Of a DNA stretch of 64,000 nucleotides, positions 25,570 to 30,468 are shown one piece after another (the stretch's first letter is position 1; every line of letters begins with the position of its first letter). The stretch comes from Oikopleura dioica (Eukaryota; Animalia; Chordata). Under the pieces are notes generated by a model. That model was not told the DNA's origin. It was given only the letters and a program-made list of their open reading frames with translations, and ran no database searches. The position numbers were made by a program, and so were the translations under genes. Location of the stretch: assembly GCA_907165135.1 (NCBI GenBank), contig OU015567.1:11842001-11906000 (forward strand), given 5' to 3'.

Positions 25570-28500
25570 TTAGATGAAGAACAGGGAGTCTTGGAACTTC
25601 GTGCGAACGGTGGTTCGCTTGTCGTGGGAGTTGAAGTACCCTCGGACCTTTGAGAGCTCATTTTCGAGCTGCTTGGTTCCCTTCCAGTGAACACGAGCTC
25701 GTTCAGCGACGATGGAAGCGAGTCTGACAGGGGCGCATTCCGAAGTACTGAAATAATTTTTACCTCTTTGATTTGAGAGGAGTAACTTACGCTCGGTTAG
25801 CCCGCATGGTAGCGAGAGACAGCGCGTATGTCATTTCGGACATGTTTTGGAGCTCGACGTTGTTGTCGTCGTGCAGGACCTGATAGAAGGTCGGATTTAC
25901 GGTTCCGCAGGCCGCCTGTGAAGCAAGGTGGAAACTGTAGCTATCTAAATAAAAAGTTGGTGAAAGGGTGGCGCGATTTGGACTTACCTGGAACGCCGTT
26001 TCCGTAGCCGGCGACAACTGTTCCAGCGGGGATGTTCTCACCCATTCCATCCTTGTCCTCGTCATTAACGCAGAAGTATTTCTGCTTTGAGCCTCGGACC
26101 GAGCATATGAAGGTGATGCCAGGCTGGTAAGACATGTCGATTTCGGCGAGGGCCTTGCGGATGCCTTCCATGAGCTCGTTCTTGAGAATGGCCTGGATCG
26201 CTCCTTCGCTGGCTCCTCCTCGGTAGATGATGATCCGCTCCGGCTTGACACCGTTGTTCTTCGTGATGAACTGGCCGATGAGGTGCTTGAGGGCGGCCTT
26301 GAGCGTATCCTTGTGGATGATGGCGAGACGGGGGTCTTGGTGGTGAACGTAGTTGACAAAACCAGTACCACCTTGAGTCGTGGACGCAACAAAACCCACG
26401 AGAGATGGGTCAGTCGACTCGGGCTCCGCGTGTGAGATGCTCATTCCCATGATCATTAGCGGAGTTGGTGAAGGTGGGAGAGGAACATCAATTCGCCAGT
26501 TTTCGCCGCCAAGTTTGGCGTTGAGCTAAGAGTTTCCTTTAGATATATTCATAATCTAATGAATAGTACCTTGTACCAGAGGTTTTTGAGCATCGCTTCG
26601 TCTGGCCGCATCACATTTTTCGACTTGACCATTTGAGTCAGAATGCCATTGTTAAGCTCGGCGATGGATTTGACGACTTCGTAGTCATGGCCAGAATCAG
26701 GGACGCAGACGAGCACGAATGGGAGTTCGTTGAGCGATCTGCCCTTATCAGCGTACTCGGAGACGATTCGATCGAAGTCAAAGCCCGAGTCAAGTTTGAT
26801 GTCGAGGACTGGCTCAGACTTGATTTCCACGCCCAGTTTTCTCCCGACTTCTACGAACATTCTGCAGAAGCTGTCCCAGGTCTGTCGATCTCGAATCTGG
26901 TTTCCGATGCAGATTCGTCCCCACATCGGCACCACGGCGGCCTTGTTGAAGGTGTTGACATTCCAGGTGCCGTTTCCTTCGCCCTTGGATTTTTCAACGT
27001 CCACTTGTTGGCCAGCGTTGGCAGTGATAGCCGGCATATCGAGGACTCGACCTTCAGCGCCCATCGCTTCTTTGTTGATTCGTATGCCAAAGTCTGCAAG
27101 CATTTGGTCATCGAAAAGCTCTTTTGTCTCGACGATCTCTTGAATCTTCGCTTGTCGGACTGGCGCAGCTTCTGCCGAAGCTCGGATGAGCTGAGCTTTG
27201 TCATCTGCAGAGATGACCTTAGGTTTTTGCCCCGCGAGGACGCGGCACATGTCGGCAGGGAACATCTTCTTTCCGCCGCCCCGACCACGGCCTCTTCCAC
27301 CGCCACGCCCTCGACCACGACCGCCGCCACCGGCTTTCGCAGTTGTAACGACAACAGGGAAGTTGCCATTTGGATTATAGCGGGAATATTCATCTCCAAG
27401 CCGGGTTTCTCGGCAAATTGGACCAAACCCGTCGAACTTGTAAATTTTTCCGTCCTCTCCTTAAAAACAAAGTTTTTTCAAAAATATGTCTTTGCATATT
27501 ACCTCGCACTTCGATGTGGAGGTGTTTAAGGGAATCAGCGAGTTCCTGGGAGTTCTCCGGGTCGTACGAATCACGGAGAATGTCAGCAATCGGCTTGTGC
27601 TGCATGAACATTCCATAGGCCACTATTTAAAACTTGATTCAGGAACTTTTTGATACTAAAATACTCACAGTCGAGATTAAGAGTGACTTTGGTGCCGATG
27701 CCTTTCCAGTTGGAGATCTTGGCACTCTGATGAATTCCGTGCCAGACTTCCCGGCCGCGAGGGATGATTCGACGATCAGCATCCTTGTTCGCGATTTGAC
27801 AGAAAGCAGCCCGGCCCTTTGAGATGGCGCTGAGGTAATCGTTTATAAGGATGAATATTCACTATTTTGTTAGACTTACGCTGCATGAAAAGCGGGGTTA
27901 GTTCGAAGAATGATTTCGATCGCCTGGATCACTTCGGCAGGATGTTCTCCTCCGCCCTCCATGAAATCGAAAAGAGCTCTCATCTCGACTCTTTGTTCGC
28001 ATTCTTCGAGAGTTCCTTCCGCTGTTTCCTCCTTGTCGCCAGTTGGGTAAGTGACGCGGAAACCAACTCCATTGTGGCGATCTTCGTAGACGCTTCCATT
28101 GCGATCGTCTATTTCGCGGAAGCCTCGAAGCTCCCGTGGAGAAATCAGCATCTTGTCCCCATCAAACGCGAACTTGACTCCGAAAATCTGGGACAGAGTG
28201 TTGACGATTTTCCGCTTGTTCTCCTTCTTCACGTCTGGAGCAGGCCCTCGGCTTGGACCTTTCTTGGCAGAAGCAGCGACCTTAAAGTTACGAACTGAAA
28301 ATAATTGAAATCCACTCACTTTTGCGTTGAAATGGTAGATGTAGAAGACTGCGCCCTTGTCGTTCTTGAAGTCCAGGAGATAGTTGTTCGTCTTCAGCGA
28401 GATCAGTTTTCCACGGGTGAGCTCTCCATTCATCCTGGCCACTGGAATATCCGCAGTGGTTTTCGCGATCTCTCTGGCTAAAATAATGAAGTCAGTAATT

Positions 28501-29279
28501 GATTTTAATCAATTATCTTATATAAGATTTTAATTTACCCATTTTATGTTGCTTGCGGTCCTCTTCGGTTTCGGAAAACTTAGCAATATTGGCCTTCAAG
28601 TTGAGCGCGTCAAACTTGCGAGCAAGATCAGCCTTGGCATACTCGACCTGACCATCACCAGTGTATGCTTCGCGCTTGATGTTCTGGAGGCGCTCCTCTC
28701 GTTCTTGAGCCTGAAATCTCTATTAATAGTCGCTCTTGAGCGCAAGGCGCCAACATGCGGTTATCGAAGATTCGAAATCGTCTAAAACGCTCTGGCGACT
28801 AGGCGATATCATATCGCTCTGTCTAGCCTATCGATTTCTTCCGTTTTATAACCCTTGTAGAGACGTACCTTGTCTGGGCCCTTGCCGCGACCTCCGCGCC
28901 CGCCACGACCACCGCGTTCGCCTCGACCACCACGAGGTCCTCCTCGTCCGCCACCACCACGTCGGTCACCATATCCTCGGCTGTCTCCGTGATCTGAAAA
29001 CAAAATTTGAAAATGTGAGAATTTAAATCTCAATCGAAAATTTCAATTTGAATAATTTAAGAGAATGATTAAATTTGATTAATGATTTATCGCAAACTTA
29101 CCTCGACGATCGTAGTCGCGACCACCCCCGCGATGATCCCGGTCGCGGTCCCTGTCGTAACCTCCTCTGTCTCGATCGCGGTCATAGCCGCCTCGGTCCC
29201 GGTCGCGATCGTATCCACGATCACGATCTCGTCGATCATAAGATCGATCCCGGTCGTCGTATCCCCGATCGTATCCCAT
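25570..29279 (-). CDS. AGO: AGO-clade Argonaute, predicted slicer-inactive, with RD/RGG-rich N-terminus
   Basis: L1 motif RGREVWHGIHQS. PAZ end FPADMCRVLAGQ. MID Y..VK...TQ...KLNAKLGG. PIWI KPERIIIYRGGASEG, YQPGITFI and NIPAGTVV. C-terminal SLFFI*. Exons join with GT-AG. Confidence 0.92.
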
Positions 29280-30468
29280 CTCTCGTCTTCGATTTTTATC
29301 TGCAAAAAAAGTGAAAAAATTGGTTCATAAAATGAATGAGGAAAAGTGAGCTGGACGGTGGTTTAAATACTGAGGTTCGAAAATTCTTGATCAGAAATGA
29401 TAAAAGGGGGAGAGTCACAGGTAACCGGATATTGGAGCTTCAATCCTGATGAAGTAGGATCGTTTTTCTCTTTCTGAATAAAGGGGATGAAGAGGTGGAG
29501 TGTAGGGAATTCAGGAGCGGAAATACGAAGAAATAACCGAGGATTTTCTCTCGCGGGAGTGGGTGGCCTTCTGAGCAATGAGAGGAAGTCTCTTTCAATT
29601 CTCGAAATGAAAATCTCCTGTCATTGGTCAAAAGCAGTTACGCCTCGTGCTCAATGTATTTTCAAAAATGACCATCTGCCATTAGGGTTTCGCACCGGCT
29701 CGAAAGTCGCCAAAATATATTTGCAAAACTGGCGACGATCATAAAAGCAATCTTTACTTGGGGTAATAAACCGGCCAGGTTATCTACGTAGAATACAATT
29801 CTAGAATATTTTATTAAAATGAATCAATTTTAGTATTCTAGAAATAATCGGGAAATTCAGTTTTGTTGGAGGGGGGGGGCGACGAAAATACTGGAAACGA
29901 ATTTTCTTTCGCTGATTTCTCTCTCAGAAATCATTATATTTTTTCACTTTATTTACATACCTTAGGTGTTTTTTTCGATGAAGGGAAGTTTCGGAAGTTT
30001 CCAATTCTCGTTGTAAGATCTTTGATCAACAAACGACTCAATGCTGACGTAATAAAACGCGGCTCATTTTTCAATGGACAAACTTCGTCTCGCAGACATC
30101 TCAAAACACAATTTCGACGTTCTGCGATATGATTCTGCTGTTATTACACTGTAAAAGTGAGACTTCGTAGATTGGGCTGTTAGTAAATAATTTATTAATA
30201 ATGATTGATCATTTTTGAATCCAGTCCTTCACCAGAATCAGGTGTAAAGCGACAGTTTTGGCAAGAAAGCAAAATAAAACGAAAATAATCTTAGGAAGGA
30301 ATAAAAAAATGCACAGTTGGAGAAAGCAAAACAGCGTAAATGAACTTAGATATTAATTGGAATTATTATTGTGCTAGTAAGAGCAAATTTAGAAGTTTTG
30401 AATTTGCTGCGAATTTTGACGATGCTGGTTCAGCAGAAGAGCATGGATTTTCAGTTGGGAGAAGCGGC

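Follow-up and report, generated by a model that had tools for sequence, protein, structure and literature searches.

A Gly/Arg-only run in the PAZ domain of a non-slicing Argonaute from Oikopleura dioica

An Argonaute gene on the minus strand of the 64-kb window (the whole stretch of Oikopleura dioica DNA analysed here) carries, within the part that codes for the PAZ domain, 20 consecutive codons that specify only glycine and arginine (27272..27331; residues 482-501 of the protein, six of them arginine). This RG run is coding; it is selectively maintained in composition and variable in length. By analogy with a region of the nematode Argonaute HRDE-1, it may serve as an additional, RGG-type point of contact with RNA or RNA-rich assemblies, a reading which we favour tentatively and which we judge to have somewhat less than an even chance of being right. 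As far as we have seen, this loop and this animal group are new for a PAZ-embedded RG sequence, while the kind is already known from nematodes.

The gene spans 25573..29279 (-) and is identical to NCBI entry CAG5113211.1 (O. dioica OKI2018_I69 chr2 g7338, 1024 aa; P0291 below). The entry was retrieved via a cluster look-up; searches were run by single exon, and the fold was computed from the database entry. Nine exon translations from the window occur in P0291 as exact substrings. The exon count is 10 or 11 (splice sites read from the sequence versus the NCBI model). In that model, 39 nt (13 codons) of our open exon 4, at 28281-28319 (-), are a GT..AG intron; this extra intron is the sole difference between the annotation and the present reading, and either form may be real.

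Exons 1 and 2 (29279-29102 and 28993-28869) translate into a disordered N-terminal tail rich in RD, RG and RGG, of which residues 1-100 are modelled with pLDDT below 50. The tail contains imperfect tandem repeats of 18 and 27 nt (Tandem Repeats Finder; 28884-28931 and 29140-29207) encoding RGG and RD/GYD units. Similar RGG-rich N-termini were seen in the relatives P0164, P0171 and P0173. Splice-site reading places exons 3 to 5 at 28710-28539, 28477-27880 and 27829-27669, exon 9 from 25944 to approximately 25793, and the end of the last exon at 25573. Exon 6 (27503..27622), with RNA joints on both sides in the marine metatranscriptome X1, supplies the first two PAZ helices (residues 410-417 and 420-430 in the AlphaFold2 model) and the first strand. 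Exon 7 (26570..27459, 890 nt, GT/AG boundaries read from the sequence) supplies the second half of PAZ, the RG run, linker 2 and MID, while exon 8 (25988..26525) encodes a PIWI core with its slicer residues replaced (Pfam Piwi, E = 8e-33). On the open stretches at ~25.8-28.5 kb, Pfam searches with exon pieces detected ArgoN, ArgoL1, ArgoL2 and Piwi. The introns measure 43-158 nt and are AT-rich, with a GC fraction of 0.16-0.45 versus 0.50-0.69 in the exons.

Read along the minus strand, the sequence VVVTTAKA leads into the 20 Gly/Arg residues, which are followed by KKMFPADMC. The run lies inside the 303-codon open frame of exon 7 and has a GC content of 80%, against 16-45% in the introns of the gene. 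Its codons are synonymously diverse. A span of 16 residues holds six RG dipeptides, two of them part of RGG, and with its modelled coil (described below) the run qualifies as an RGG/RG-motif disordered region; together with the two lysines that follow it carries a charge of +8. A six-frame scan of the entire window returned just three G/R-only runs of at least 8 residues, all within the Argonaute gene, the remaining two being in its N-terminal tail. A preliminary description of this DNA had proposed an in-frame RG run inside PAZ, and the minus-strand translation, the extent of exon 7 and the phmmer placement given below bear this out. It had located the insert at 27272-27333; the location stands, and the end coordinate is corrected to 27331.

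Whether such a segment is retained in the mature transcript is an immediate concern. The NCBI annotation keeps the run as coding sequence. Contigs from X1 confirm the introns at 27460-27502, 27623-27668 and 27830-27879, the first of which (intron 6, 43 nt, GT..AG, minus strand) is joined out in an X1 contig, and one contig continues without a break across the first 11 nt of the run, reaching 27321 from the exon 6/7 junction. RNA covers the edge of the run only and none of the X1 contigs bridges it, so the strongest evidence for its translation is evolutionary. Cryptic in-frame GT..AG introns around the run were considered and rejected: 57 such pairs arise by chance, none resembles the AT-rich introns of the gene, and X1 contig 4 contradicts those whose donor lies upstream of 27321. 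That the segment might be spliced out, as the preliminary description had allowed, is thus countered by the coding annotation, by RNA unbroken into the edge of the run, and by the in-frame indels reported below.

X1 contig 3 (223 nt) was rejected as a transcript of this gene, as it matches 27299-27331 only (33 nt, 3 mismatches); its loose ends encode other RG sequence, and it is probably another RG-rich plankton transcript. A Pfam match of exon 7 to FoP_duplication (E = 0.009) was dismissed as a low-complexity artefact. None of the raw reads from three O. dioica-labelled runs (X8-X10) was placed on 25700-29400 at 90% likeness, a result that is no test of expression.

The evolutionary evidence comes from metagenome and Logan contigs, which were sorted into lineages according to their nucleotide identity in exon 7 outside the run. 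In lineage A (the window and L006-L008, 99-100% identical to one another) the run measures 20 residues; in lineage B (L004, L005 and L009, ~87% identical to A) it measures 20, 11 and 10 residues, respectively; and in lineage C (L001-L003, ~70% identical to A) it measures 18. All contigs of these three O. dioica-like lineages keep the run, which answers the earlier doubt as to its presence in orthologs. All copies consist of G and R alone, and no indel shifts the frame. The 20-residue B allele encodes the very peptide of lineage A with seven synonymous differences, from which it follows that A and B descend from a 20-residue form and that the short alleles arose by deletion. In L005 (545-700), an in-frame stop is found ~20 codons upstream of the 11-residue run, at a position occupied by Tyr in L004; a null allele or an error in assembly might explain it.

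By Nei-Gojobori counting, the RG columns show a pS of 0.6-0.8, and of 0.76-0.81 for lineage A against C, with a pN of 0 over ~37 non-synonymous sites, while the rest of exon 7 shows a pS of 0.70-0.73 and a pN of 0.18. At the latter rate, ~6.7 non-synonymous changes would be expected in the run, and none is seen. The placement of gaps somewhat favours the pN of 0, while the purity of every copy is independent of the alignment. These data bear on one alternative, namely that the run is a low-complexity expansion of a surface loop, tolerated and without specific function, in which slippage-prone Gly/Arg codon runs do no harm. Such an expansion would fit the length polymorphism within lineage B, the lack of a run in related species and a weak 12-nt periodicity (Tandem Repeats Finder). 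It is at odds with the missing non-synonymous changes in the face of saturated synonymous divergence, as well as with a run that no contig lacks and no copy interrupts. Moreover, codon usage within the run is heterogeneous, and recent slippage therefore fails to explain its purity. We consider a tolerated expansion unlikely.

An exhaustive search of representatives with exon 7 returned only four proteins below 1e-30. The relatives P0164, P0171, P0172 and P0173 are full-length proteins from transcript-like contigs, are 40-45% identical, and combine a slicer-dead PIWI domain with an RGG-rich N-terminus. In these proteins the same loop comprises 8-16 residues rich in G/K/R/P, with a GGRGR core in P0172. 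Judged from this comparison, the RG run is an apparent expansion of an already basic loop, confined to the O. dioica complex. Three metagenome proteins, P0003, P0158 and P0161 (42% identical to exon 7), carry at the same place a Lys/Thr-rich loop without RG, followed after F-P by H-I/V-R instead of the usual D/E-x-C, and constitute a further divergent relative.

The position of the run within PAZ could be fixed against known structures. In a phmmer search of the PDB, M504-F505-P506 of P0291 align with Y338-L339-P340 of human AGO2, and the alignment is interrupted exactly at the RG run. The run and its two lysines thereby occupy the place of the seven-residue AGO2 loop 331-337 (GQEQKHT), the loop ahead of the YLPLEVC-type strand to which the preliminary description had assigned them. 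An AlphaFold2 model of P0291, built with 78 aligned Argonautes (mean pLDDT 81, pTM 0.81), flanks the run with confident strands: FPVVVTT directly before it (27335..27355 (-), residues 474-480, block pLDDT 87) and K-K-M-F-P directly after it (27257..27271 (-), residues 502-506, pLDDT 89, also located by phmmer against the PDB). The run itself is modelled as coil with a mean pLDDT of 53, falling below 50 at residues 484-488. The modelling proposed earlier thus yields a low-confidence coil, and the run is predicted to be flexible and to lie at the PAZ surface, adjoining the pocket strand.

The PAZ domain around this loop is reduced, as had been noted from the sequence at the outset. According to alignment A1 and hand-checked PAZ segments, ~17 alignment columns, including that of AGO2 F294, are gone at 27419..27427 (-), between F-D-G-F and P-I-C-R. 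From the Y-K-F motif to T-A-K there are 37 residues in O. dioica versus 51 in the relatives and 53 in vertebrate AGO, which leaves the domain ~14 residues shorter than in the closest relatives and ~16-17 shorter than in vertebrate AGO; the nearest relatives keep the columns with the F294 strand. The equivalent of Y279 is retained (Y445), F294 is lost with its strand, and M stands in place of Y338. Residues 451-470 are modelled with pLDDT 57-60. Pfam did not detect PAZ on the exon pieces, yet the model still gives a reduced PAZ of helices and strands.

The residues right after the run are, as we take it from published AGO structures, the equivalents of those lining the 3'-end pocket of human AGO2. 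Through its charge, an arginine-rich loop at this site might hold the guide 3' end or the guide-target duplex in place and so offset the reduced PAZ. The run directly precedes the Y338-L339 equivalents, the lineages with the PAZ deletion are also those with the RG expansion while relatives keep a longer PAZ and lack the run, and a basic loop is found throughout the family, all of which would suit a part in guide 3'-end handling. Such a part is harder to reconcile with natural alleles that have half the run, or with HRDE-1, which loads small RNAs without the RGG region of its PAZ lobe (bioRxiv 10.64898/2026.10.15.759339). We regard it as improbable.

Foldseek matches the model best to human AGO2/1/3/4 (E ~1e-64, target TM 0.77-0.86), and phmmer places the AGO clade far ahead of PIWI chains (AGO2, 2.5e-68; Siwi, 1.5e-27). 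P0291 is a eukaryotic Argonaute of the AGO clade with the N, L1, PAZ, L2, MID and PIWI architecture. With human AGO2 it shares the overall fold, the Y279 equivalent and the strand after the loop; it differs in a loop of 23 residues instead of 7, in the deletion of the F294 strand, and in the replaced Y338 and slicer residues. The 5'-phosphate pocket of MID (Y-K-Q-K-K) is complete, Y698, K702 and K739 being invariant, and Q714 and K735 nearly invariant, in the 78-sequence alignment. In place of the DEDH slicer tetrad, reading against the A1 consensus gives GMSISH for GADVTH and YRGGASEG for YRDGVSEG. By these residues, P0291 is a non-slicing member of the AGO clade, as the tetrad defines slicers and not the family. 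An identity as a nematode WAGO was rejected, as the gene is from O. dioica and the protein belongs to the AGO clade.

To our knowledge, RG/RGG regions were long thought to be restricted to Argonaute N-termini. The closest known counterpart of the O. dioica run is residues 304-371 of HRDE-1 in C. elegans, described in October 2026 as an RGG region in the PAZ lobe, NRDE-3 and WAGO-10 having RG-rich regions at the structurally equivalent position (bioRxiv 10.64898/2026.10.15.759339). Deletion of the HRDE-1 region, or R-to-A substitution, abolishes chromatin binding and heritable silencing and leaves 22G-RNA loading intact; the RGG of hnRNP U can replace it, and its relocation to the N-terminus inactivates the protein (bioRxiv 10.64898/2026.10.15.759339). 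P0291 shares with HRDE-1 an RG/RGG-rich, predicted-disordered insert in the PAZ lobe of a non-slicing Argonaute, in addition to a disordered N-terminal tail, and in both cases the segment is kept among close relatives. They differ in that the HRDE-1 region has 68 residues, including Ser, Asp and Tyr, while the run has 20 and is pure G/R. HRDE-1, compared here by description only, may carry its insert earlier in PAZ and in a different loop, to go by residue numbering. Its host is a nematode WAGO, whereas that of the run is a tunicate AGO-clade protein; any similarity would consequently be convergent and the origins independent.

A role as an RGG-type contact could take the following form. The RG loop would be a disordered insert in the last PAZ hairpin loop, grown from the long basic loop of appendicularian-type relatives. 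Flexible and strongly positive, it might contact nascent transcripts, chromatin or condensates, possibly together with the RG/RD-rich N-terminal tail. It would act outside the pocket for the guide 3' end, and its activity could be modulated by arginine methylation. Since half-length alleles (10 and 11 residues) exist in one lineage, the full length of the run is not essential.

The preliminary description had stated that no Argonaute was known with an RG cassette inside PAZ. This does not hold, given the HRDE-1 region in the PAZ lobe (bioRxiv 10.64898/2026.10.15.759339) and comparable inserts in a wasp and in algae. Among 169 full-length Argonautes, five carry extended RG-rich insertions, placed in an earlier loop of PAZ (~AGO2 244-252): 'argonaute-4 isoform X2' of the parasitoid wasp Copidosoma floridanum (P0200, residues 383-436), P0050 (1223 aa, residues 575-606), Closterium P0217 (residues 398-431) and two further Closterium proteins, P0215 and P0222. 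Like the run, these are internal RG/RGG low-complexity inserts in the PAZ of AGO-clade proteins. Unlike it, they comprise ~30-80 residues, lie some 130 residues ahead of the YLP-type strand, flanked by the first PAZ helices, and are not beside the strand of the 3'-end pocket. At the loop of the O. dioica run itself, no RG run was found outside O. dioica in the same 169 proteins. The objection that such insertions might be common is accordingly borne out in part: they recur, in the wasp and algal proteins in another PAZ loop. To judge from these sequences, RG cassettes seem to have entered PAZ on several occasions, its loops accepting them repeatedly.

Better known are the N-terminal motifs of PIWI proteins, C. 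elegans CSR-1a and plant AGO1, which share the (G/A)R(G/A) and RGG chemistry of the run and are known PRMT substrates and Tudor ligands. These lie in terminal tails outside folded domains, whereas the O. dioica run forms an internal loop between two PAZ strands. A docking function similar to theirs, in which putative GRG sites, once methylated by a PRMT, would be bound by a Tudor protein that brings the Argonaute into a granule or complex, might be suspected from the repeated GRG and RGG units, which resemble the sDMA motifs of Sm tails and PIWI proteins, from the established fact that N-terminal RG motifs of Argonaute and PIWI proteins are methylated on arginine, and from the RGG tail on the same protein. 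The motif chemistry of PIWI-type sDMA docking is indeed present in the run; its internal location and its host, which is of the AGO and not the PIWI clade, set it apart from that type. The corresponding loops of relatives are K/P-rich and not RG, suggesting that charge outweighs the methylation motif, and both germline Tudor genes and Piwi homologues are reduced in O. dioica (PMC12147562). We find methyl-arginine docking quite doubtful.

An auxiliary contact for RNA thus remains our preferred reading of the run. It can be extended to the suggestion that a tunicate Argonaute clade independently gained the traits of nematode nuclear WAGOs, that is, loss of slicing, RG sequence at both the N-terminus and PAZ, and a pruned 3'-end pocket. 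We think this extension unlikely. If it were true, it would imply a previously unrecognised small-RNA pathway directed at chromatin or nascent RNA in Oikopleura, whose Piwi and Tudor genes are few, and an RG loop within PAZ would be a hallmark reached convergently by such Argonautes. The O. dioica run is an independent and compact case, a defined hairpin loop holding 20 residues of nothing but G and R. The natural half-length alleles, together with relatives that lack the run, make it a clean system in which to address the role of a PAZ-embedded RG loop. The run also offers a lead into the function of the divergent, slicer-dead Argonautes of Oikopleura, so far unexplored.
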